The notes below the pieces were generated by a model. The model searched no databases and was not told the DNA's origin. It was given only the letters and a program-made list of their open reading frames with translations. Below, piece after piece: positions 27,491-46,647 of a stretch of 64,000 nt of DNA. Source of the stretch: Paramoeba atlantica (lineage: Eukaryota > Protista > Discosea); assembly GCA_977017575.1 (NCBI GenBank), contig CDRNVI010000021.1, positions 620,001 through 684,000 of the forward strand, written 5' to 3'. The position numbers and the translations under genes are program-made. How positions within the stretch are numbered: the first letter of the stretch is position 1; each line of letters starts with the position of its first letter.

Positions 27491-30400
27491 ATGGCGACCG
27501 ATATCATGACTCTCGGTTCTCGTCAACGAATGTCTCTTCCGGATCTTGTGATTGTTATCGAAGAATTAAAAGCCTTTTTGATCGGTTCTCGTGTAAACAA
27601 TATCTACGATAACACCTCGAGAGACGGCTTTTACACATTTAAACTTACTTCACGTTCGGTGCCACATGAAAAGTTCACTGTGGCTCTTGAAAGTGGATGG
27701 CGAATTCATCGTACGTGGTATAAAAGGCCTACCGGGGTAGACCACGCGCACCCTTCTGGATTTACCATGAAACTACGAAAGCACCTTCGTAATACTGTAG
27801 TAAGAGATGTTTGCGTTGAGCGCGGAGATCGTGTAGTGTGTCTTGCTTTCGGCTTTGAAAGCGGGGCGAACTACTTCTTGGTAACGGAATGCTATGGTAA
27901 AGGTAACGTTATCTTAATGGACGCTGATCGCTTAGTACTAGCGGCGCTCCGTCCGGAACTTGTCGATCGAGGTGCTCGCAAAGTTGATAGCGAGAAGACT
28001 GCGCAAATAAACGCCGAAACAGATGGACGGAATGCGATTTCTAATGTCGACCCAAACAGACTCATCGATACTTGTGTCACAACGAGTCAGATTAATCAGA
28101 TGTTTCCATTTATTAAGGCAAAGATTTCTACTAATGATAAAGTGTGCAAATGGGAAAATGCATTTAAAACAGTGCTTTTGGAGAATTCCTCTATGCGATT
28201 ACGCCAAGCTTTGTTGCGCGCCACATTTTTAGGACCTGTTCTTATCGATCACATCCTTCACGTTGCTTTTGGTCGCATTGAAGCTGAAAATGGTCTTCAA
28301 CCAATAGATCTCTCTACCACTTGTTTGGCCGTACTGAGTCACCCTTCTCTTCTCCACAGTCTTAGTTTCGAATTGATGACCTGCGCCACAGAAATACAAG
28401 GACGAATTTCCGAACCAGAAACGAAATCTTTCGGATTTTTATATCGAAAACGTGTTCAAATTCAAGAAAGTAATCGCCAAGAACCTCCTCTTTCTCCTGC
28501 GTTACAGGTCCCTGATACTCTGGAACGAATGGAAAACTTCACAACAGATGACATGATGGAAAAAGTCTCCTTGAATCAGGGTGAGTATCAAAACTTGAAC
28601 AAGCAACTATCAACACATCAGCCGCAAGAGACAATGAGTAACTATCCACCTGTAGTATTCTCATTCCTTCCCATTGTACATTTAAAGAACATGCTCATTG
28701 AAGAACGTTTATCTTCGCTAAATCATGCTCTGGATACCTATTATACTTTTGAAGAAATACGGAACGTGGAATCGCACCGTGAAAAGTTATTCACAGAAGC
28801 AGAATCAAAAATTGTGCGTTTTGAGCGAGAGCATCGACGACGGGTTCAATCATTACAAAAGGAAGAAGTGAGAAGAGAACTGCAAGCATTGACTATCTAT
28901 CAAAATATGGATGTCGTGGAGTCACTGCTAACCGTGTTCCGTGAGGCGTTAAACCGACGTATTTCTTGGGATGATATTAGTCGCCTTGTTGCAAGACGAC
29001 ACCGTGAAGGTGATAGTCTTTTTGATCGCTTGTGTCGATTTAATCTTGAAAAACGTGAAATCACTTTAAAATTGCCCTATTCAGATCCCGGAAATGAAAA
29101 TTCAGAGGAACTATCATCTGCCACTGCAAACATGAACTCAGTTTTGGCTGAAAAGATGCGAGACAATGATTTCCTAGAAATAACGTTGTCTGTCGACCTC
29201 AATGCCTATCAGAATGCACAAACCTTTTATGATGTCCGAAAAAAACAGCATGCAAAGTTGGAAAAGACGCTTGCATCTGAATGCAAGGCCGCGAAAGGCG
29301 CTTTTCTAGCTTCTCAAAAAATACAAAGGAAACAAACTCAAATTCGTAAGGCTCCTCTTTACCAACGCGTCTCTGCTTGGTTCGAAAAGTTTCTTTGGTT
29401 CAAGACGTCTCAAAATTTTCTGGTAGTAGTAGCTCGCGATAAAACTCAAAATGAATTGTTGTGGAAGCGGTACGTATCGAAGGAGGACATTGTACTTCTA
29501 GTAGATACTAACACTTTGGAAAGCACGCCCTCATCAACTATATTTTCCTTAAATCGAGGACATGAGTTTATTTCATTGGCAGTCATAAAATTATCTTTCG
29601 CAAGCCTTGGGGTCGAAATTGGTCAGGATTTAGCTTTGAATGTCGTGAAACCCATGATTTTACACTCTCTAGAAGAAGCAGCAATATTTTCCGCATGTTA
29701 CTCCTCCATGTGGGATAAAAAGCAACGCAAACTATCGATCTGCTCTACCGAAAGGCAGGTTGTCTTTTCTTGGGCTAAGCATGCTAGGTTGGAAACAACA
29801 CAAGATGTAAATGCATTGGAGCCTGGGCCAGGCAAGCAATCGGTGTCAAATAAAAAAGTATCTTTCAATCTTACGCTTACTTTTACTGGTGAAATAGAGC
29901 GAGAGAACATTATGGCTCTGGAACTAGGGTGTACAGCATTGTGTCTTCCAAAGGAAACTCCCTCTCCGCCAATAAAACACAGATTGTCAAATGAAAATGG
30001 GACTCAATTTCGCAAGAAATCGCCGGTACATGATTCTAGTGCTCATTCTCTAATTTTTTTGAATCCAAGGACGGGTAACACCGAGCTAAATCCTGCGACT
30101 GAAGACACGAAGAGAATTTTGCAAAAGAAAGGCATCAGTAAGACTAAACTAAAGAAAATTGCGAAACATAAGGAGCAGTGGGGAGTTAACTCCACACCAG
30201 AGCAACCAATAGAAAAGAATCATGTGAATGCTTCTCTTTCCACAGAACAAGATGTAAAAATCAGCATTGATATGGAACGAAATATGAACGAATCAACCCC
30301 GATTGTAGATGATCACGATGTTGAGAATAATAGAATTTACAAAAGACCCGAAAGATTAGCATTGAACAGCATTGTTAGTCAAAATACCTCTTTCTTTTTA

Positions 30401-30769
30401 TCGAATGAAGAGAAACTGTTTTTCGGTTCTTCTACATTCATAATCCCGTCACAAGAATCGGAGGCGGTCTCTTCTATTGGTGAGACTAGTGTTGCCATTC
30501 CCGTTTGTTTACCTTGGCTTACAATCGTCCGTTCGAACGTTTCTCTTGCCGTCCGACTCAGTCCAGAAAGATGCGACTCAAAAAAATCTTTGCTTTCAAA
30601 AAAGATACTTCAACAGCTGTACAAGGCAGCGGATTTGCACCATCAATTGTCACCTCAATTGTTATCTCAAATTAGAAACTGGGAAGAAAATGACATCATT
30701 CCTCTACTTCCTTCCGGACGATGTAGAGTACATTCGTGGAAAGCATTAAAGCCAACCATAGAACTTTAG
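27491..30769 (+). CDS. NEMF: NEMF/Rqc2/Tae2 ribosome quality-control factor
   Basis: RVNNIYD, PSGFTMKLRKHLR, GDRVVCL, GNVILMD, LNAYQNAQTFYD and WFEKFLWFKTSQNFLVVVARDKTQNELLWKRY. Confidence 0.9.
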   Translation: MATDIMTLGSRQRMSLPDLVIVIEELKAFLIGSRVNNIYDNTSRDGFYTFKLTSRSVPHEKFTVALESGWRIHRTWYKRPTGVDHAHPSGFTMKLRKHLRNTVVRDVCVERGDRVVCLAFGFESGANYFLVTECYGKGNVILMDADRLVLAALRPELVDRGARKVDSEKTAQINAETDGRNAISNVDPNRLIDTCVTTSQINQMFPFIKAKISTNDKVCKWENAFKTVLLENSSMRLRQALLRATFLGPVLIDHILHVAFGRIEAENGLQPIDLSTTCLAVLSHPSLLHSLSFELMTCATEIQGRISEPETKSFGFLYRKRVQIQESNRQEPPLSPALQVPDTLERMENFTTDDMMEKVSLNQGEYQNLNKQLSTHQPQETMSNYPPVVFSFLPIVHLKNMLIEERLSSLNHALDTYYTFEEIRNVESHREKLFTEAESKIVRFEREHRRRVQSLQKEEVRRELQALTIYQNMDVVESLLTVFREALNRRISWDDISRLVARRHREGDSLFDRLCRFNLEKREITLKLPYSDPGNENSEELSSATANMNSVLAEKMRDNDFLEITLSVDLNAYQNAQTFYDVRKKQHAKLEKTLASECKAAKGAFLASQKIQRKQTQIRKAPLYQRVSAWFEKFLWFKTSQNFLVVVARDKTQNELLWKRYVSKEDIVLLVDTNTLESTPSSTIFSLNRGHEFISLAVIKLSFASLGVEIGQDLALNVVKPMILHSLEEAAIFSACYSSMWDKKQRKLSICSTERQVVFSWAKHARLETTQDVNALEPGPGKQSVSNKKVSFNLTLTFTGEIERENIMALELGCTALCLPKETPSPPIKHRLSNENGTQFRKKSPVHDSSAHSLIFLNPRTGNTELNPATEDTKRILQKKGISKTKLKKIAKHKEQWGVNSTPEQPIEKNHVNASLSTEQDVKISIDMERNMNESTPIVDDHDVENNRIYKRPERLALNSIVSQNTSFFLSNEEKLFFGSSTFIIPSQESEAVSSIGETSVAIPVCLPWLTIVRSNVSLAVRLSPERCDSKKSLLSKKILQQLYKAADLHHQLSPQLLSQIRNWEENDIIPLLPSGRCRVHSWKALKPTIEL

Positions 30770-31750: not shown

Positions 31751-33245
31751 GGCGCGAGCGACACCCCCGTGTTGGAGGACAATGACGGTTCGCAGGGAGG
31801 GGAGAAGGGAGAGGTGGCGGGGGTGAATAACTATACAAAGGAAGTAACCATACAAAGGAAGTAACCGAAAAAAAGTTAGAAACGTAGGTATAGCGTATTT
31901 TGACATGAAAAACTTGAACTAGACAGTATATAAATACAAACTTACGTCGGGTCCTGATATACTGTATGTATCAGGTTCGTAGGGAAAAATTTGAGCCCCC
32001 CCCAAAAAAGAAATCCGGCGCCGCTTCGCCAAAAAGGACAATTAGGTGGTGCGGGTGGGACTACGACAATTAAGTGGGGGGGCACAGTATAAATATGGCA
32101 GCGTTATAAATTCTGGCAAATTTATAATTATTTACGAAGGGGACAGTATACAGCCCAGTGGGGGGGCAGCTATATACTGCCCCCCCCCCCACTTAAGCGC
32201 AACCGGGTTTTGGCCGAAAATTGCGCTTAAGGAGCCTGGTCAGAAATATCTCAAGGGGAAAAGATATTTCGGGCAAAAAAAATAAAAAAAAGTCGCGCAG
32301 CTTCGCGGCGCGGATAGCATCTGTGCTTCTTAGCATTTATGTTGTGTACTTATGTTTCGTGAGTCATCTTCTAATCGGTGCCGTCTCCAAACTGTTCCTC
32401 ACCTTCGTGTCCTCGGTAAGTGCGGGGGGGGTGGGATGGGATGGGATGCAACATGTTTGACGATTCTGTGCATTTGCATATTGTAGTTACGATTCGTTAA
32501 AAGAAACAGAAAATGACTAAAAGTGAAGTTGTTCTAAAAAGGAGACTGCTTGTAAATTATTTTGGTTCACCGGCACTATAAATGTAGGTTGAAAATAAGT
32601 AAAATTTGTTTGAACAATCTTTCCCAAAAGGACTCAGGAAAAAAAATTTGATCTTTCGTTGATCTCTTTTCTTATTTTTTCTTTTTGCTTACTTACCAGA
32701 CCACACGTTTTTTCGATCAGATGTGCCCCCTACCTCTAATGGTAAGACCCCAAAAAACGTCCGAAATATGGGGAGAATACGAAATATGGGGAGAATCGGG
32801 TATTTGTACCAAAAGTTGGATTATTCTGGACCGTTTCGCAATTTTTTCCTTTTTAGTCCCTTCATTAAACGCTGAAGCAGTTCTCAACGCGAAGGGAGTA
32901 GCCGTGGTGGCTTCCAAGAGGGTTCAAACTGGATGGGAGTGTCCGGGAGCGCCTGGGAGCGCACCTTATCCTTTTTACAGGTCACCAATACCAAGTAGAC
33001 CAATGTACATGTAGTAGTACTACATGTACTACATGTACATGTAGTAGACCAATGTAGTATATCCTGGGCGGTCCATTGAGTATTCCAAGCATTGAAATAT
33101 AAGTTGGAACGTCATGAGTACGAGTGGAAACGTTTTAAAAAGTCACGTAAAAGTTTTTTCGAGCGGAAAAAAATCATCAGAAAAAAATGGATTTTAACCT
33201 ACATTTATAGTTCCGGTTACCCATTATTTTTTAACATTATCACTC

Positions 33246-33314
33246 CTTCGTAAACACGCTTGTTACCGGTCCCAAGCCCGGCACCGCCATATTCGGCGGA
33301 GTGTGAGGGTGAAG
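33246..33314 (+). ncRNA. Twister self-cleaving ribozyme, type P1
   Basis: P1 CTTCG/TGAAG, U^AA, P2 ACAC/GTGT, GC, P4 CCGG/CCGG enclosing L4 TCCCAAGC, P5 CCGCC/GGCGG, then GA and GGG (T1 partner of CCC). Predicted cleavage is between 33251 and 33252. Confidence 0.88.
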
Positions 33315-33490
33315 ATTTCAATACATCTATAGCACGATTATAAACTAAATATAATTGAACTACTTGTTTCTAGTATCCAGTATAACTGCTACATTTAGCT
33401 AAACATTTAACTAAACAATCATACACGCCTGAAAATGTCACGCATCAATTCGCTTGGTCCCGGCCTGGCAGTACTTCATCATCTGTAACA

Positions 33491-33710
33491 AGGCCCATGG
33501 GCTCCGTACCCTTCGGGTATCACTGCCCCAGCAGTCGTGCTGGGAGGCCCATGGGCTCCGTGTCCTTCGGGGCACACTTGCCGTTGCATTTATACATCCT
33601 CTGTAACGAGGCCCATGGGCTCCGTACCCTTCGGGGTACCACCGCCCCAGCATTCGTGCTGGGAGGCCCATGGGCTCCGTGTCCTTCGGTGCACACTTGC
33701 CGTTCCATTT
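33491..33710 (+). repeat. 2 x ~118-bp tandem repeat, each with two AGGCCCATGGGCTCCGT sub-repeats and UUCG-type hairpins
   Basis: Sub-repeats start at 33491, 33545, 33609 and 33664. Confidence 0.9.
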
Positions 33711-33820
33711 GCGCTATACATCCTCCTCTCCAGCATGTTTTTTTAATGAAGTGAAAACAGAATAAAAACAGAAGGGAGAGGGTGGGAAGTTGTGACGTGC
33801 TATGGCATGCCTGGCACCTA

Positions 33821-33978
33821 GGGCTTGGTCCCGGTAACATGGTGCTTACGAAGGAGTGATAATGAGGGAGTTGCTATGCCCTGTCCATGGTATCATGTTC
33901 AGGGGAACAGCGACCCCCCATTATCTCGGCGTAGTAAACACGCCTTGGCTTGCCTGGCACTACGATTCCCGAAAAAAA
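33821..33978 (+). repeat. Internal complementary region (reverse complement of the element's joined ends)
   Basis: 33846-33909 is a perfect 64-nt complement of [35586-35634 joined to 33235-33253 via the shared CATT]. Confidence 0.85.
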
Positions 33979-34040
33979 ACCTTAGTTCCTTAATCCTCAC
34001 TTGAGGCATGGTAACGGGAGTCCTCCCCCCTAAGAAGATT

Positions 34041-34309
34041 TGAAGTTGAAAAATATGGAGTGTTTGGGGGCGAGAAAACAAAGGGGGAGGAGTAATGTTG
34101 GTGCGTTATAGATCCCCCCATATGGAAGTATCGAGGCACACACCGGACGTCTCGGGTTGACGCTCGGAATACGAATATGAAGTTGAAAAATATGGAGTGT
34201 TCGGGGGAGAGAAAACAAAGGGGGGGAGTATTGTTGGTGCGTTATAGATCCCCCCATACGGAAGTATCGAGGCACACACCGGACATCTCGGGTTGACGCT
34301 CGGAATACG
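34041..34309 (+). repeat. 2 x 137-bp-period tandem duplication inside the element
   Basis: TGAAGTTGAAAAATATGGAGTGTT...GGTTGACGCTCGGAATACG at 34041 and 34178. Confidence 0.9.
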
Positions 34310-34572
34310 GCTTTTCAGGATATCTCGCCTAGTAGGAATATTGAATCAGAAATTCAGACCGACGATAGTGAACGCGTTAGTGCTTATTCGGTGGAGAGAG
34401 AAAAAAGAAAACTAGAAAAAAAAAGCAAACGGTTGCTTTGCTTGATGCATTTATACCCGATATATTCTTTGTTAACGAAGATTCATCATAAATACTGAAG
34501 GAGCAACTTGGTTTCTTTACATCAACACACCTAAAACATGGTTTACCATGGGGTATCAAATGTTGCACGGCA

Positions 34573-35157
34573 TTGAAAAGTACCCAAAATTTTATTGAAT
34601 GGATAAATTGTCCCCCTTTTCACGGGAAAATAAGGAAACTAGCCTCCGGGGTTTGGTTACAACATTTATTAGAACTCGTGGAATGCGGGGTGCTACGTGT
34701 GGCACACGACTCTCGATCATCATCACGTTTATATTTACGTTACTTCGAGGCATCAAAAGGGGAGGAATTGTCAAGAAGTATTGCGGATGGAACACCACTA
34801 AATGAGATGTGCAATCGCCCTCCTTGCTTGAATTTTCCAGCTATCGCTGAAATTATCCATGTAATAGAAAATTTCCCCAACGTAAACTTTTTATCCGCTG
34901 ATATGCGACACTGGTTTCACCAGAGTGAAATACCATCAGAATCGGGGCGTACATCAGTTAGGAGATCGATGTGTAATGAGATCACGGAAATGCATGGACA
35001 GATAGGGAAACATGGACATTCTTTTCGAATTTTCCATATTAAATCTAAAGAAAACCCAGCGGACGGGTTGACTCGAGAAGAGCATAATTATGACATAAAA
35101 GAAGCACTCCTGAACTCAGCTCTAAGAGCTGGCGATGTACATGTAGACCCTATGTAA
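34573..35157 (+). pseudogene. Internally deleted reverse transcriptase / RNase H ORF
   Basis: RT N-terminal motifs LVECGVL..YFEASK..SRSIADGTPLNEMCNRPPCLNFP..FLSADMRHWFHQ are joined directly to an RNase H C-terminus GRTSVRR..IFHIKSKENPADGLTR. No YxDD is present, and the ORF start is TTG. Confidence 0.7.
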
Positions 35158-35812
35158 GAATTATAGAAAGCGTAACTGGAGGAAACAAACACACGAATCT
35201 AGAGTAATTAGTAAAATTTATGAGTGGATAGCATGAGGAATGGCAAAGAAAGTAAATCCCCCCCCAAAAGAAAAAACGTTAACCAAAGGTTTACGCCAAC
35301 CCTTTGTTCTATTGCACTCAAAGTTTTCTACTCCATTATGCAGTAAAATTTCCTTCGTATTTCTTCTTCCGAAAATTTTCTATAAATGCACCCTGGTCTC
35401 ACACCCCAGCCTTCTCGACGCATGAGTAAAACCGAGCTGCCGGGGAGATCACTCGGTTGTGGGAGCGGGCCCCTTAAGTGGGAAGCGACTGGGCTGCGAA
35501 ATGAACCGAAAATATATTTTTTTCGGCAATCGTAGTGCCAGGCAAGCCAAGGCGTGTTTACTACGCCGAGATAATGGGGAGTTGATGTTCCCCTGAACAT
35601 GATACCATGGACAGGGCATAGCAACTCCCTCATTTAGTGTGTGAACGAATCGTTTGCAACCTGCTTTCGAGAGCACGCCATGCTGTAGTGGTACGAAAAG
35701 TGTTCCCAGCATATTTTCATATCTTTGAACGAGAATGCACCCAGCCAATTTCATTAGCACTTCCCCTATGGCAACTGGTCGTATGCTTGGTTTATTTATT
35801 GTCCTAGCTGAG

Positions 35813-37793: not shown

Positions 37794-38411
37794 ATGAATG
37801 ACTTTATACGCCCTTGTCGCATCCGAGGCAACTCCCTGCCACCTGAGTACGAGATGGCTTATTTTATTCAGCCTATTGCGAATCCACACGAAAGCTGGAC
37901 GACGCACACCCCTGTGTGCTCTTGGTTGGGTGTGAAATGTGTCGATTCCCGCGTCGTTTCGCATATTTCGTGGCAGGGAATGCTCCTACGCGGTAGTGTG
38001 CGGTGGGAACACACACCACCGCACGTAACGCACATAAACTTAGGCGCTGGACGTTACGAGCAATTTTTTCGCGTCAACTACTTAAACGGCCCGTTACCTC
38101 TTGGAGTGCTTCCCCGAACACTCGTGTTGTTTTCCGTGTTTCATGCACAGTACCATGGAGAGCTGGATATGACGGTGCTGCCTCCTGAGCTGCGATTGCT
38201 TGACTTGAAAGAAAACTTTTTCTCAGGTACGCTAGATCTTACACAGCTTCCCAGCACATTAGAAATTCTTAGCCTGAGTGGTAACTCTTTTGTTGGGGAA
38301 ATCAACTTTCTTTTATTGCCCACGCGCTTGAAGCGTTTGGACATTTTGGGGGCACAAGTCGTTCCTAAGGATGCTTTTGTTCCACCCCGTGTTGTTTTGC
38401 GACTGGGATAA
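37794..38411 (+). CDS. LRR protein, dispersed family copy 4
   Basis: RIRGNSLPPEY..VCSWLGVKC cap followed by LRRs. Confidence 0.85.
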   Translation: MNDFIRPCRIRGNSLPPEYEMAYFIQPIANPHESWTTHTPVCSWLGVKCVDSRVVSHISWQGMLLRGSVRWEHTPPHVTHINLGAGRYEQFFRVNYLNGPLPLGVLPRTLVLFSVFHAQYHGELDMTVLPPELRLLDLKENFFSGTLDLTQLPSTLEILSLSGNSFVGEINFLLLPTRLKRLDILGAQVVPKDAFVPPRVVLRLG

Positions 38412-38755
38412 GAAAACAAGAGATCTATTCTTCTTAGTTTATTAAAGTGTTGCTACGTTAGAAAATGTTATATTTATTTTATAGTTGATCGTACGAACCA
38501 TAACATACAGCGTCTGCATGTACGTTCTCTGAGTATCAGAAGTTCGCGTTTCGTAATTGATATTACGTCAGAAGATGACTCAGAAGAGTCATCCCCAGTC
38601 TGAATTCTTTGCACTTTCGGAATAAAATTTATTTTGATTTTGCTACAGGAGAAATCTTCCGAGTATTTATACTTCTATTACTACATTCAAGTCACAATTA
38701 AAGCACAACGCAGTGTAGGCAATTAGAGGTTTATGTTCTCATAAGCTTAAAATTC

Positions 38756-39628
38756 ATGTATTCGTTTGGATATGTAAGGTATGCAGCACTGTTGGTGAGC
38801 ACAGCGGATGATACTTCCTCGGCACATGTTGCCTCGCTCCGTGGTCGGGTTCGTGGATCCCAACTTCCTCCGGAATATCACCTAGATATTTTCCTTCGTA
38901 ACGTCGCCAATCTTCACGTTTCGTGGACTACGGATACTGACGCATGTTTGTGGAAGGGAGTCATCTGCGACGATTCAGGCCAAGTTGTCTCTTTGCAGTG
39001 GAGTATGACAGGGATAGGAGGATACCCACAATGGTCGCATCTACCAGACACGATTAAAACCATCTATCTTGGGGCCCTATTTACTAGTAATTCTTTACGA
39101 GGGACAATAGAATTTGCTGAACTTCCTCCCACTGTTCGTGAATTTGTGGTGGATGAAAATTGTTTTACCGGGAGGCTCATACTGCGAGACGTGCCGAAAA
39201 GTATGCAAATTCTTCACCTTCGTAGCAATCAGCTTTGTGGTGTCATAGACTGGGAAGACCTTCCTCCAATGCTCCAAGAATTGGACATAATAGGAAATAG
39301 TTTTGTCGGCACTCTTCCCTTGATTACTCTACCCTATCAGATGACACGTTTGTATGCCTCAAAAAACAATTTTTCAGGATCGCTGGAACTAGAATGTCTT
39401 CCTCAAAATATGCAACGACTACATCTTGCGAATAACCATTTTACAGGAACAATAAATATTACAGCACTACCTAAATCAATGCGTTACCTGTATTTGGAAA
39501 ATAATCAGTTCACAGGTCACGTAGATGCCTCGGCAATTCCGGATTCGATTCGCGTAGTGGATTTAAGTGGGAATCATTTTTCAAAATATAGCCCTGAACC
39601 TCTTCCGTACGAAGTCAAGGTAGGATAA
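38756..39628 (+). CDS. LRR protein, dispersed family copy 5
   Basis: RVRGSQLPPEY..ACLWKGVIC cap followed by about 8 LRRs. Confidence 0.85.
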   Translation: MYSFGYVRYAALLVSTADDTSSAHVASLRGRVRGSQLPPEYHLDIFLRNVANLHVSWTTDTDACLWKGVICDDSGQVVSLQWSMTGIGGYPQWSHLPDTIKTIYLGALFTSNSLRGTIEFAELPPTVREFVVDENCFTGRLILRDVPKSMQILHLRSNQLCGVIDWEDLPPMLQELDIIGNSFVGTLPLITLPYQMTRLYASKNNFSGSLELECLPQNMQRLHLANNHFTGTINITALPKSMRYLYLENNQFTGHVDASAIPDSIRVVDLSGNHFSKYSPEPLPYEVKVG

Positions 39629-40039
39629 TTCTTTTACCTGCTCTGCGATCTCAATGTGTTGAGACTTTCGCCGTAGCTATATTTGCCTGGAACCAAAGGC
39701 ACCGTTCTATCATGCTAACGAAAATTTTGATGGGAAATTGATGGAACAAACGTTTTTTAAACAGTTTGCTCCATTTTTTCGTAAAAATTGTCTAAACTTC
39801 TTTGTGCTAATCTCAAAGTATTGAGTCCCAGGGCACTCGCCGTCTACCTCTATGAGTTAGCAATGAATATTAGTTTATAGAAGATACATTTTACAGTCAT
39901 ATTCTTTGCGACATATTGATCGAACTCAACCTATTAGCTATTGTGCGTTATAGTTATTCAAGGGGAGCATAGCATAAGTCGTAATTATTTTGTGACACCC
40001 CAAATCAGACTAAATAAGACCTTTTGTTCCTCCTTAAAA

Positions 40040-40849
40040 ATGTTCACTAATTGGGATGATGACAGTGACGAATATGATCGCTTTTCCGATGTGACAAAAA
40101 CTGCAGTACATTCCGTTTCTATAAACGATGGCGTCTCAAAAATTGCAACTTCAAACTTCCTGGATACCAAGATTCCGAAATCTTCAAATTATAGTTCACA
40201 TACTTCTCGGGATATTGCTTTTCCTTCTTTTTTTGAACAGCAGAAAATGGTTTATTTTGTTCAAAAAGGGTGGAAATCCTCGAAACATCATAATTTATTA
40301 GTGGAGAAAACAGAGCTTGACTATTTTATGCCCTCCATCGCCTGCTATTATTCAGGTAACGATCTTTGGTATTCATCTCAAATTGAGAATCACTCATTAT
40401 ATTCTTCGATAGGGCTGCGAATGCACAAGGCCTATATTAGACAAAGGGTGAAACAGACACGGCAAACTGAACGCGTGTATGCTGTGCAACAGTCGATGCG
40501 TCGTAATAATTGTGACACGGAAGAGACTTTATTGCAAATTCTTTATACATGTGCTTCTGTCGGTCATGGTAGTCTACGCAGAAACGAGATCAATAATCGT
40601 ACAGCTAACAAAAATAAAACATCCGTCAGTTTTACGCCTTTTGAGTTCTTTGAGCACATGCACACAGGTTATTTTCGTGACAAAATGAGAAAACGATTTC
40701 GCAGCGACCAAGAAGGCAACAAAGAGGGTTCTTTTGAAACAAATGACAGTTGGAAAGTGCAAGTTTATCCCGCCCTGCGCTTGGCATGGAGTGGACTGAC
40801 TCCTTGTGAAAAATTTATGTATTATTCTTCGTTCATTACACGGACTTAA
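40040..40849 (+). CDS. Hypothetical protein with C-terminal HMG-box-like helix
   Basis: C-terminal ALRLAWSGLTPCEKFMY resembles the HMG-box W..L...EK..Y pattern. First ATG is 40040. Confidence 0.5.
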   Translation: MFTNWDDDSDEYDRFSDVTKTAVHSVSINDGVSKIATSNFLDTKIPKSSNYSSHTSRDIAFPSFFEQQKMVYFVQKGWKSSKHHNLLVEKTELDYFMPSIACYYSGNDLWYSSQIENHSLYSSIGLRMHKAYIRQRVKQTRQTERVYAVQQSMRRNNCDTEETLLQILYTCASVGHGSLRRNEINNRTANKNKTSVSFTPFEFFEHMHTGYFRDKMRKRFRSDQEGNKEGSFETNDSWKVQVYPALRLAWSGLTPCEKFMYYSSFITRT

Positions 40850-41008
40850 ATAGTAATACGCACTATATCTTTTACTGGACACTTAAGTGCGACGTATTCT
40901 AACTTTTTACTCGCTGCTAACTTATTCCGACCACACATTGCTTCTATCACAAGCAATGTTTTCTAAATTTCCGATTTATCTGAATTTTTTGCTTAAAACA
41001 TATTTTTT

Positions 41009-41665
41009 GTGGTGGACACCCCATTGCGTCCTTCCAAAGTTCACTGCGTACCATTGCCTGTGGAGTTCGACCTAGCACGATTGACACAACACGTTAAGAA
41101 CCGTCATAGCACCTGGACAACGCACACGCCAGGATGTCAATGGTCGGGCATAACTTGTAATTCGCAGGATTCCATAGTGGAAATTGACTGGACGAAGAGA
41201 ATGCTACGGGGCCTACTTACATGGTTGTATATTCCGAGTACGATTCTGACTTTCGATGCAAGCAGTAACTTTTTTAACGGAGTCCTTGAGACCGATACAC
41301 GTTGGGTTTCTCTACAGGTATTTTTTATCTCGGATAATCTTATGACAGGAGAATTTCCTTCGGAGAAGCTACCCTTCAATTTGGAGCATTTGGATCTCAG
41401 TTATAACGCTTTATCGGGTGTAGTAGATTTCACGACACTGCCTGTTACTCTACAGAGCTTATGGATAGTGGGTAATCGCTTCGAAGGTGTGCTAAATTTA
41501 TCGTGTCTTCCTCCTCTAATTGTTGAAATGAATCTATCGCGTAATCAATTTACTGGTGCAGCCGATTTTTCTTTGCTACCTGATTCACTGATCTGTATTA
41601 ACGTCACGGGGAATCAGATCTCATCCTTTAAACCCGATTCTTTGCCGGCATTTGTGTTAGCATGA
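41009..41665 (+). CDS. LRR protein, dispersed family copy 6 (5' end possibly frameshifted)
   Basis: SKVHCVPLPVEF..GCQWSGITC cap followed by LRRs. There is no in-frame ATG before the cap. Confidence 0.75.
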   Translation: MVDTPLRPSKVHCVPLPVEFDLARLTQHVKNRHSTWTTHTPGCQWSGITCNSQDSIVEIDWTKRMLRGLLTWLYIPSTILTFDASSNFFNGVLETDTRWVSLQVFFISDNLMTGEFPSEKLPFNLEHLDLSYNALSGVVDFTTLPVTLQSLWIVGNRFEGVLNLSCLPPLIVEMNLSRNQFTGAADFSLLPDSLICINVTGNQISSFKPDSLPAFVLA

Positions 41666-42897: not shown

Positions 42898-45800
42898 ATG
42901 ATACCAAAACAAATCGATGAATCCTCTACCTCAGAGTTGGGATCATTGAAAAACTCTACTTCCCTAAATACATTAGGTACACCTGAAGACTTTTGTCAGG
43001 CCTCGAATTTTAAAACCAATTTTCTAAGAGAGGAACCGAATACAAATTCACAGTCTAAAAATTCGCCCCATTCACCAGAGTCTAATAAGGACACCACCCT
43101 GGAAGACAATTCCTATTTGGATATGCTAGGTGCGCTTGGTCTGAATTTTTCTAGCACGTCGCCATATACGGGAGAAGCCTCTGAAAATAGTTTTACGTTA
43201 CATTCCATTCAGGAGACTTCTCAAGACAAACCTTTATCTTCCTTTGCTTCAGCCTGGTCTTTTTCAGAATCTGACGAGAAGATAAATGCGAAATTCCCTT
43301 CAGTTAACAGAGACGCGAGCACTATCAAAGCTGCAGCCGATAAAACATATTTTGAATATAACGCACCGAACAACTATCAAGAAACTATTCAGGTTCCTTT
43401 TTCGCCTATCAATAAGATATTGGACTCTGCGGATTCCGCATCTTCATATGCAGGTTCGGACATATCTACGGGTATATGGACTGCGTATGAATTTGCTCCA
43501 GATACAGTCGATGTAACGAACCAAAACAGTGCAGAAATGGAACCGATAGGAAGTGAGGTACGCTGTGGATTCCAGAATACTAAAGAAGATAAATGGGTGG
43601 AAAAGGCTCTTCAAAAAACTCTAACACAGACGGCAAAATCTTTCGAGGTCGACAATGTCTCTTCTTTTGTTGTCAATGACATATCGGAACAACATAGTAC
43701 TAATTTAAAGTTAAATGAAGAAACGAATAATCTGGATCAGATAGAGAACAAAAATCAACCGACATGGGCATTGAGCTCACAAGACTATGCATCAGCCAAA
43801 AAGACGTTACCAGCTCCAACCAACAGCCTTACACCTCCACTGCTAGATTCCGAGGGTAAAACGAATTGTGCAGCATCCTCAGTGGAGCATTCGTCCATCA
43901 ATCTCTTGCCCACTATGACCCATTCCCGTGTAAATCCATCATTTTCCCTTCAAAACACTTCGGAAGATCCGGAAAAGAGGGCAATACATCCGGTAAGTTA
44001 TTTTTCCTCTTCCTGGGCAACCCCTCCGCAGGAAAATAATTCTACTCAAAAGACTAATCCCGTTTTGAAAGAGGTCACGCATTCTAATACTTTTTCTACT
44101 CGGCGTCCCATTGTTCCAGCTATTCCCTTACCTGCACTCCTTGGGACGGACCCTGGGCCCTTTCCATTTCCGGTGAATCAGATTCCTCCCATAGATCGCA
44201 CCACGATATCTTCTCAATTGCAAGAGTTTCCTACCCTCCCATTTCAGCAACGAAATCTCCCGCCCAAGGCAAGCAGCGTCGTGATACCAGGCCCTCCGAA
44301 TGCTCCGCAAGTTGGACAGCTCACAGCTACTCATCGAAAGGACCACTATCTTCCCGTCACTGAAATCTCATCAATGCAACAACAATCTACGGAAAATGTT
44401 CCGGAGGAGGAGCTCGCCTTGACGCACTGCACATGGATTGTCAATCCCGATTTGGAGAGCTATCGCAACGAAGGTGTTAAAGGCACCTCTGGGCAACGTG
44501 GCCCGATGTCCGGTGCAGTTAGCTATCATGTCATTCAATTTCGAAGCCTGATCCAGCACTGCTTTTACCTCCCTATCCCAGAATGGCTCTATGAGACGCC
44601 CAGCGTAAATCTCTATCGCACACCCGAAGGTCTATATGGCTTATTTGTCGGGCAAAGTACATACCGCACTACACCTCTGGTACTGCACTACCTCTTTCGA
44701 CGTATTTGCAACGTTGAGTTGGTATATGTGGAGGTCATGCGCCGACAACCCTGCGCTTTCTTCTACGTTTATTGCCGTACCGAATCGGAACGCTCCCGGG
44801 CAATTGCGTTGCTACACAAAAAAGTTCTCATGGATGCCCACGGTGCATGGGTGGCGAAAACTACAGCGCAGGAAACCGCCCTGCGTGAGTTTGTCTCCAC
44901 CGATCGCGACAAGATGTTCCCCGCAGTACCTTTGCCACGGCAATGCCTTGTGGTGGAGTTACGCACGGCCGTGCGAAACACGCGAGGGGGTCAGTCTTCC
45001 AATGTCAGCTCGACCACCGCACTTCCTACAACTATGGCCCCGGTGCCGCTAAATGCCTCCGTCAATCCTCCTCCTGTGTTGCAACCCCACCGAGACAGGG
45101 CACGGACATCATTTGGGCCTACACAACTGCAAGGCGCTGCCCCTCTCTCCCTGTCACAGTCGCCTTCGTTGCAGTTGCCGAAGACGTTCCCCGGCCCTAC
45201 AGCACCGACACAATCACAGTCTTTAACACTGCCCCTTCACTCGCATTTGGCACAGCATGTGTCCTCTATATCTACTCCACCATCTGGAAGACTTGAAGAA
45301 AAAGAGAAAGAGCGGGCCCCCATGGCGCCACCTCCCACCCCTCCTCTATCCATGAATATGCCACTCCCCACGCCATCGCTCCCGGGTTTGCCACTCCACC
45401 AAGCGAAATATCCAGAATCCATAACACCTCCCTCCCTTCCACCCCTCTCCTCTTCGTCCGATCCACCCCCCTCACAAAGCCTCTCCTCCCTGAACCGCAA
45501 CGCCCCCCAGTTCTTTCCCAGCCACCCCATCCCCCATCCCTCCCCCGATACCCTCTTGTCCACCCCCACCGGCACTGGCGAAACCCGACCTCTGTCTCAC
45601 CCCCACAACCGACAACCCCCCACCCCCCCTTACCCCCTGCCCCCCCACCCTCCTTTCCCCCACGGCGGCTCTACCCCCACCCTCCCCTCCCTACCCCCCT
45701 ATGACCCCAACCGGCCTCATCCCCCCACTACCCGTAGTCATACCCGTGGGAGCAGTAGTAACACACCTACGCTCACTTCACTACCCAGCAACACCAGCAC

Positions 45801-46020
45801 CAGCAACACCACCCTCAGCCCCAACCCTCCCCTCTCTACCCTCCCCCAGCCTCTCCCCCTCCCCCCCGCTGCCCACCCACGGCCAGGGTCCCACCCCCTA
45901 CTCCCCCCCTTCCCCCCTCCCCTGTGGGGCCTTCCCCCCCTACCCCCCCGTGGGCTTCCCCTGGGCGCCCCTCCCCCGATGCCCACGCTCCCGAACACAG
46001 CAAGGGGGGGAGCGTTTCAA

Positions 46021-46052
<32 letters not shown>

Positions 46053-46647
46053 GCAGCCATCTGCTGCTGCAGCTGCAGTTACTCCGGGAATGGCCTCGAG
46101 TCCCTCAGGGGGGTTTGCCCCCGGGAGTGGTGGGAGGGAAGGGGTGACGCAACGGAGAGGTGGAGGGATGGGGATGGGGGGTGCGACGGGGGGCGTGATG
46201 GCTGTAGGGGGGAAAGGGATGGGATGGGGAGAAGGGGGAGGGGGTGAGAGGGAGGGTGGGGGTGTAGGGGGTACAGTGCAACAGGAAGGGGTGGGAGGTG
46301 GGAAGGAGGGGATGAAGAGGGGGTGGGAGGGAAGTATGGAGCAGGGTGTGTCGGGGGTGGTGGTGTCGGAGTTGGAAAACCGGAAAGGGTTGTCGCAGGA
46401 AGTTGACGTGGGTTCTACTACGGAAGTATCGCGTGCCGCAACAAATGTAACTGAGGTGCAGGTGGAAGGAGAAGCGGGGAATCGGAGAATAGCTTCCTCG
46501 GAAGCGGCAGGATTTGCTTCTAGCTCGGTACCAAAGCCTCGGATGGCATTTACTACCACAACTTCTACCATGGAATGGAGCAAAACAAGTCAAGTCATGC
46601 AGCTCAATCGAAATGTGTTCTCCATCGAGCCTGAATCTTTGGAGTGA
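42898..46647 (+). CDS. Large low-complexity protein with central RRM-like domain, Pro-rich region, polyQ and Gly-rich tail
   Basis: 1249-aa ORF with YGLFVGQ..VEVMRRQPCAFFYVYC..AIALLHKKVLMD (RRM-like, about 44630-44980) and a CAG/CAA run at 46021-46056. Confidence 0.7.

Follow-up and report, generated by a model that had tools for sequence, protein, structure and literature searches.

A predicted type-P1 twister ribozyme at the 5′ end of DIRS-like tyrosine-recombinase retrotransposons

Introduction

One of the closest described counterparts of the locus reported here is Perere-3, an RTE-type non-LTR retrotransposon of Schistosoma mansoni that carries variants of the twister ribozyme at its 5′ end (PMC8501958). 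HDV-like ribozymes head the L1Tc/NARTc elements of Trypanosoma cruzi and the R2 elements (PMC6765202). Twisters cleave between the U and the A of a UAA loop, one nucleotide 3′ of helix P1 (PMC8501958), and they have a conserved catalytic guanine at the bottom of helix P2 (PMC6154101). DIRS-type retrotransposons are defined by an internal complementary region (ICR), which is the complement of the joined ends of the element, that is, of the circle junction (PMC6681497).

Canonical twisters are widespread, and the only role defined for a twister in the literature that we searched is that of the relaxed variants in one schistosome non-LTR element. The same search returned no paper on twisters in tyrosine-recombinase (YR) or DIRS elements, none of relevance on twisters in trypanosomes or other kinetoplastids, none linking self-cleaving ribozymes to tyrosine-recombinase elements, and no report of a ribozyme in a DIRS element. 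Here we describe a twister motif within a stretch of 64 kb, the whole of which we call the window, together with the retroelement that contains it and its relatives in the same genome. A sequence-only reading of the window had suggested that release of the RNA of a kinetoplastid YR element by a twister was unreported; we likewise found no paper on a twister in a kinetoplastid YR element, but a twister at the head of a retrotransposon as such has a precedent in Perere-3 (PMC8501958).

Results

Structure of the motif

The motif lies at 33246-33314 on the forward strand and reads CTTCG-TAA-ACAC-GC-TTGTTA-CCGG-TCCCAAGC-CCGG-CA-CCGCC-ATATTC-GGCGG-A-GTGT-GA-GGG-TGAAG. The sequence-only reading had described it as a complete type-P1 twister, and the letters are as stated there, with P1, P2, P4, P5, both pseudoknots, the cut site and the GA all found. 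P1 pairs 33246-50 (CUUCG) with 33310-14 (UGAAG), including a closing G-U pair, and is followed by the L1 loop U33251-A33252-A33253. P2 is formed by 33254-57 (ACAC) and 33301-04 (GUGU), P4 by 33266-69 (CCGG) and 33278-81 (CCGG), which closes the L4 loop UCCCAAGC at 33270-77, and the P5 hairpin CCGCC-AUAUUC-GGCGG by 33284-88 and 33295-99. Both pseudoknots can pair, T1 between GGG at 33307-09 and C33271-C33273, and T2 between G33258-C33259 and G33276-C33277. The nucleotides conserved among twisters (UAA, GC, the L4 loop, and GA with GGG) are present at 33251-53, 33258-59, 33270-77 and 33305-09, and this copy has no disruptive change in conserved positions or helices. The twister family rule (PMC8501958) predicts cleavage between U33251 and A33252, the same bond that had been proposed from the letters, and G33305, within the GA at 33305-06, corresponds to the conserved guanine at the bottom of P2 and is the candidate catalytic G.

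A pseudoknot-free minimum-free-energy fold of the motif yields P1, P2, P4 and P5. The stability of this fold is unremarkable (z = -1.1), and z-scores were weak overall (-1.1 to -2.3), a thermodynamic measure that is not decisive for a pseudoknotted ribozyme.

The low folding z-score could be taken to mean that the motif resembles the twister consensus by chance, as could the score given by Rfam. With the Rfam twister-P1 model (RF03160), the window copy reached 18.3 bits (E ~8) against a gathering threshold of 67.2 bits. The sequence-only reading had named this search as a check that could refute it, and the absence of any hit at the gathering threshold in the 64 kb formally speaks against it on that count. 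Over the whole assembly (45.7 Mb in 248 contigs), the same model gave 56 matches of 18-39 bits, the best at 39.1 and all under 67.2, and the Twister-P5 model, run at permissive thresholds, gave 17.9 bits in the window for the core only. In the RF03160 alignments of sister copies, the 21-position P3 stem-loop is deleted and P5 appears as an insertion, and the conserved core positions all match (UAA, GC, CCGGUCCCAAGCCCGG, GAGGG). The scores are low because the model expects P3, which is absent here, and has no P5; we therefore rejected the shortfall as evidence against a twister and ascribe it to a limitation of the model. Annotated twisters have P3 in 78% of cases and P5 in 1% (PMC6154101), and the architecture found here is therefore rare but allowed. 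Twisters that lack P3 and bear P5 are probably under-annotated in eukaryotic genomes, since Rfam twister-P1 misses them.

Several lines of evidence are at odds with a chance resemblance. The 16-nt core CCGGTCCCAAGCCCGG is identical to the Rfam twister consensus cCGGUCCCAAGCCCGg and occurs a single time in the window, where shuffled sequences lead one to expect 0.06 matches with up to two mismatches. A strict descriptor, TAA-N4-GC...TCCCAAGC...GAGGG, has 41 sites in the 45.7-Mb genome, compared to none for a reversed control pattern. We also built our own covariance model from an alignment of 43 distinct genomic copies with the structure written out; with this model, the window copy scores 76.8 bits and is the only match in the window, and at least 143 sites are found genome-wide at E ≤ 0.001.

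Covariation among genomic copies

We sorted 44 distinct genomic sequences into three classes. Class A twisters have a P2 of ACAC/GUGU and include the window copy, which belongs to subfamily A1; class B twisters have CUCC/GGAG. In class C, P2 pairs CCCU with AGGK, and the loop UCCAAAGC pairs with UGG, not with GGG. We also observed a decayed class B twister at L012:8028-8097, located just downstream of a non-LTR RT ORF, in which the loop has mutated to GCCCGAAGCC and the 3′ half has been lost.

In the 43-sequence alignment, 87.2% of the paired cells hold a base pair, compared to 37-47% when the partners are slid by 1-3 columns, and changes on both sides are seen in 18 of the 25 pairs. Compensatory changes occur in P1, P2, P4, P5 and T1. 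Both-sided changes affect all six pairs of P1, a helix that like P5 and T1 was not used in selecting the copies, and all four pairs of P2, where the pairing is partly circular given that the copies were selected on P2 and P4 complementarity (at least three of four pairs). The same circularity bears on P4, in which pair 25-36 is GC in 27 copies, AU in 13 and UA in one. In T1, pair 30-88 is CG in 34 copies, AU in nine and unpaired in none. The T2 pairs are invariant across the copies, which is compatible with the fold and uninformative. The strict descriptor, the core alignment and this covariation effectively refute the idea of a chance resemblance. Judged from its sequence, the motif at 33246-33314 is a genuine and structurally intact type-P1 twister of uncommon architecture, with P3 absent and P5 present, for which cleavage is predicted.

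The host element

The sequence-only reading had placed the twister at the 5′ end of a YR element, and comparisons between copies bear out the position and support the type of element. Homology between copies starts at 33234/33235, 17 nt before the cut, and delimits an element at 33235-35634 on the forward strand, which is an internally deleted, non-autonomous member of subfamily A1. About 15 copies of this 2.4-kb unit are present, with 89-99% identity. The 17 nt upstream of the cut (33235-33251) comprise the 5′ strand of P1 (33246-33250) and U33251, and a cleaved RNA would lose them. Tandem repeats fill part of the leader at 33468-33710 (+), with units of ~54-119 nt and a copy number that differs between copies. 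An ORF of 194 aa at 34573-35157 (+) is a remnant of an RT/RNase H gene; it has no Pfam match by itself, and it fuses residues ~72-207 and 518-585 of the 587-aa ORF3 of its relatives. The two parts are separated in ORF3, and the window copy is therefore an internal-deletion derivative. It has no Gag or YR ORF and its RT is deleted, and the ribozyme of this defective copy may serve no present purpose. The 3′-terminal 118 nt (35517-35634, +) are 97% complementary to an arm of the ICR at 33861-33978.

The full-length relatives of subfamily A2 are 6.95 kb long and contain behind the same kind of twister 78-bp tandem repeats, an ICR, a Gag-like ORF1 of 351 aa, an ORF2 of 293 aa and an ORF3 of 587 aa. 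ORF2, examined in relative L021, has sub-threshold Pfam matches only, to Phage_int_SAM_4 (E 7e-4) and Phage_integrase (E 9e-3), and 48 matches to it are present in the genome. ORF3 matches RVT_1 (E 8e-5) and RVT_3, and an exhaustive HMMER search recovered 984 relatives with conserved RT and RNase H motifs; a word-based protein search had returned two and then five proteins. This arrangement of Gag-like, putative YR and RT/RNase H ORFs points to a YR element. In both the window copy and the 6.95-kb relatives, we found no inverted or direct repeats between the 5′ and 3′ termini, the only repeats being those between the ICR and the termini.

The tandem-repeat units between the twister and the ICR measure ~119 nt in A1 and 78 nt in A2 (L022, reverse strand 615-979), and the copy number of the leader repeats is highly variable, with long arrays on contigs C28, C34 and C37. 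The flank immediately upstream of the element (33180-33236) belongs to a different repeat found in at least 12 other places at 91-98% identity, such that the element lies in or beside another repeat. Near-identical pairs of loci (99-100%) were observed on contigs C21/C32, C2/C12, C29/C49, C19/C43 and C67/C185, which suggests separately assembled haplotypes or a recent segmental duplication; copy counts for the element families are therefore inflated.

Elsewhere in the window, a host gene of ordinary type, located shortly before the repeat cluster begins, encodes a homologue of NEMF/Tae2, a ribosome quality control protein, in a 1092-aa ORF at 27491-30769 with NFACT_N, NFACT-R_1 and NFACT-C domains. 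An array of leucine-rich-repeat ORFs (205, 290 and 218 aa; Pfam LRR, LRRNT_2) with the N-terminal motif SWTTHTP..C.W.G..C occupies 37794-41665, and a similar leucine-rich-repeat ORF follows another twister at L012:2271-2891. A 1249-aa ORF at 42898-46647 is rich in Pro, Ser and Gly and contains a poly-Q run, and the GC skew at 44001-46000 is -0.37.

Association with recombinase genes

Across the genome, a twister is found on the same strand and within 8 kb upstream at 27 of 38 YR loci, and downstream at none of them. Viewed from the 143 twisters, YR or RT homology lies downstream of 40, upstream of three and antisense at five. This pattern is not restricted to class A, as YR and RT homology follows the class B twisters L017 and L019, and seven class C twisters, whose context was established by coordinate correlation, lie 2.5-4 kb upstream and on the same strand of YR matches with 22-28% identity. 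Twisters of all three classes thus stand at the head of YR elements, with recombinases that are just 22-28% identical.

Kinetoplastid-like genomes are transcribed polycistronically. It is conceivable in such a genome that the host uses twisters to process its own polycistronic transcripts and that the link to the element is incidental. The genome studied here is kinetoplastid-like, and a kinetoplastid-type, spliced-leader-like 19-mer is present in about ten dispersed copies, compared to none for a control pattern. We consider this explanation highly improbable in view of the placement of the motif, which in all copies is enclosed by the repeat unit and lies 17 nt from the end of that unit. Twisters furthermore show a strong preference for positions upstream of YR or RT genes in the same orientation, and among the loci examined none lay outside a repeat context. 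As a separate observation, one of the spliced-leader-like sequences, AACTTTAACGATAAAGATACAGTTTCTGTACTTTGTTG at L028:1470-1520 (G000:C3:645479-645529), is immediately preceded by an A-run and immediately followed by a 5′ UTR and ATG; judged by this arrangement, it looks like an SL-capped mRNA that has been retroposed, and not like an array of SL RNA genes.

The internal complementary region

The ICR of the window copy occupies 33821-33978, in the orientation of the reverse strand. It corresponds, in reverse complement, to the two element ends fused 3′ (35517-35634) to 5′ (33235-33279), and it spans the cut site. Two of its segments match the 5′ end in reverse complement, 33842-33864 matching 33235-33257 and 33821-33839 matching 33261-33279, and the block that they form abuts the arm complementary to the 3′ end. 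The complement of 33848-33864 is 100% identical to 33235-33251, the 17 nt upstream of the cut. The five differences between the ICR and the 5′ end all fall downstream of the cut (TAAACACGC vs TAAGCAC-C, and GGTCCC vs GGGACC).

An ICR that spans the cut is present in subfamilies A1, A2, A2b, A4, B1 and B2. Ahead of the cut, identity to the ICR is 100% over 17 nt in A1, 18-19 nt in A2, 18 nt in A2b and 29 nt in B2, and mismatches in the 5′-end arm of the ICR lie downstream of the cut in class A and in B2. This pattern is the one predicted if each new copy drew its sequence 5′ of the cut from the ICR and its sequence 3′ of the cut from the cleaved RNA. The class A differences are common to its subfamilies and amount to about one independent observation, and B2 contributes another. 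B1 fits less neatly, as both of its mismatches are located ahead of the cut. The distance of the cut from the element start is 17 nt in the window and 17-29 nt in other subfamilies, and in these the cut does not fall at the first nucleotide.

The motif might also be a true twister by descent that is now a dead relic, carried along in the leader with no role either at this locus or in the life cycle of the element. The deleted, non-autonomous state of the window copy is compatible with this, as are the disruptive mutations in several sister copies, which include a U-to-A change at the cut site in L010 and L021 and mismatches in P2 or P4 in L032, L035 and L036. When we sought the stretch in sequencing runs, it had no match in one possible RNA run, which would also be compatible with a relic; contigs from one study were of DNA type, showed repeat-type variation and gave no informative ends. 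A relic is nevertheless unlikely in our assessment, as three deeply diverged lineages (YR identity 22-28%) have retained the twister in an equivalent position, its fold being maintained by compensatory changes, the ICR is co-located with the cut site, and the window copy itself is free of disruptive change in its conserved positions and helices. Separately, one contig starts at 33251, and we considered this start as a possible RNA end and rejected it, as it is a unitig boundary of a DNA contig.

Search beyond this genome

Among the RT relatives, we found no twister within reach on L070, L074 and L075, of which L070 has just 1.6 kb upstream of ORF1 and is therefore of little weight as a negative, and the contigs L071-L073 are too short to show one. 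A metagenome scan for the P4 core together with T1 returned at least 120 stretches, and 41 of the 80 that were examined parse as P1-type twisters; the short contigs carrying these 41 contain no YR or RT homology. The most similar metagenome twister, on L080 (JGI Ga0172372_10070299), has the P2 ACAC/GUGU, the loop UCCAAAGC with UGG, a P5 and no P3. It lies on the minus strand, starts 449 nt from the minus-strand 5′ end and has a 5-bp P1, and it mixes the P2 of class A with the T1 of class C. The 2.7 kb downstream contain a 345-aa ORF in which YR or RT homology is not detectable. The pairing of twister and YR is thus seen in this genome, and the search beyond it met few long eukaryotic contigs.

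Discussion

Taken as a whole, the results are best explained by a genuine twister that serves as the first functional module of a DIRS-like YR retrotransposon with a mechanism of RNA release and ICR-based repair, and we consider this explanation probable. In the mechanism we propose, the element would be transcribed within a longer read-through or polycistronic RNA, in which the twister, to judge by its fold and the family-wide covariation, would fold co-transcriptionally and cut between U33251 and A33252. The released element RNA would start with a 5′-OH at A33252 and would lack the first 17 nt of the element. By analogy with the model for DIRS-1, the ICR, whose sequence is present in the element, may act as a template or splint in reverse transcription; it overlaps the 5′ end of the RNA by 28 nt and holds the missing 17 nt, such that the lost bases could be restored and the circle junction formed. 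The circular DNA would then be integrated by the tyrosine recombinase, which for the deleted window copy would have to act in trans.

Two parts of this mechanism differ in how firmly we hold them. Because the twisters lie strictly upstream, on the same strand, of the YR genes and the ICR stores the bases that are cut off, we infer that the twister would release the RNA of the element when it is embedded in read-through or polycistronic transcripts, as is the case for L1Tc, and this fits all the evidence. The further proposal is that twister and ICR are one device, in which, in a genome that is transcribed polycistronically, a cut 17-29 nt inside the element replaces a promoter-defined start and the ICR restores those bases and closes the circle in every round; we find this plausible and about equally open to doubt.

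The twister could alternatively serve mainly to make unit-length RNA with 5′-OH and 2′,3′-cyclic phosphate ends, which would be ligated into a circular RNA template in the manner of retrozymes. DIRS-type elements use a circular intermediate, which accords with such a scheme. Retrozymes are known to have circular RNAs bounded by ribozymes (PMC4918200, PMC7761336). Each element here has, however, a single twister, at its 5′ end, and our own model finds none at the 3′ end of full-length copies, so that a second cut would require tandem copies; this makes ligation into circular RNA quite improbable as the main function. Returning to release and ICR-based repair, a strict twister here heads several deeply diverged families of DIRS-like YR elements, and if the twister/ICR device is real, it would give canonical twisters a defined role in a second class of retrotransposons and would assign a specific function, one that is open to test, to the ICR of DIRS-type elements, which has long been puzzling. 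The match between cut site and ICR makes DIRS-type replication testable as the conversion of a truncated RNA into a complete circular DNA.

At the level of the ribozyme, the copies described here resemble the type-P1 twister (RF03160, clan CL00120; Oryza sativa Osa-1-4, PDB 4OJI) in the UAA cut-site loop, P1, P2 and P4, the L4 loop UCCCAAGC, GA-GGG, the T1/T2 double pseudoknot and the open P1. They differ in that they are without P3 and always have P5, score 18-39 bits with RF03160 compared to the threshold of 67.2, and include one class with CCA:UGG in T1 instead of CCC:GGG. The hammerheads of Penelope-like elements and of plant and animal retrozymes (PMC4918200, PMC7761336) are likewise small self-cleaving ribozymes built into the termini of retroelements, but they belong to another ribozyme class, are present in both terminal repeats and give circular RNAs as products.

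At the level of the element, the VIPER/TATE elements (PMC6681497), which we compared by description only, are alike in their kinetoplastid host group and in their layout of a Gag-like, a YR (here putative) and an RT/RNase H gene; they are described with split direct repeats, and the survey is silent on ribozymes. DIRS-1 of Dictyostelium and other DIRS-type elements with ITRs and an ICR (PMC6681497) share the set of Gag, YR (here putative) and RT/RNase H as well as an ICR that complements the joined ends. The element described here is no textbook DIRS-1, since its two ends do not form an inverted repeat; the sole long inverted repeat is that between the ICR and the 3′ end, and the ICR is located in the leader, upstream of the ORFs.

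With regard to ribozyme-headed retrotransposons, the HDV-like ribozyme of L1Tc/NARTc (PMC6765202) provides a parallel from a kinetoplastid, in that it cuts the RNA of a retroelement out of long or polycistronic transcripts. L1Tc and R2 are, however, non-LTR elements with another class of ribozyme, and the HDV-like ribozyme cuts at its own first nucleotide, so that no bases of the element are lost. In Perere-3 (PMC8501958), as here, the retrotransposon begins with a twister as its first module, the cut is near the 5′ end, and 5′ processing of a co-transcript has been proposed. Perere-3, a non-LTR element, relies on target-primed reverse transcription; its twister cuts at the border of the element, and P1 takes its 5′ strand from the variable target-site duplication. 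The element here is a YR element of DIRS-like type with a predicted cut 17 nt from its start, and it encodes the P1 5′ strand itself, with a mirror copy in the ICR. Ribozyme-headed retrotransposons as such were thus already known, and what is new is the class of element and an ICR that stores the bases that are cut off.
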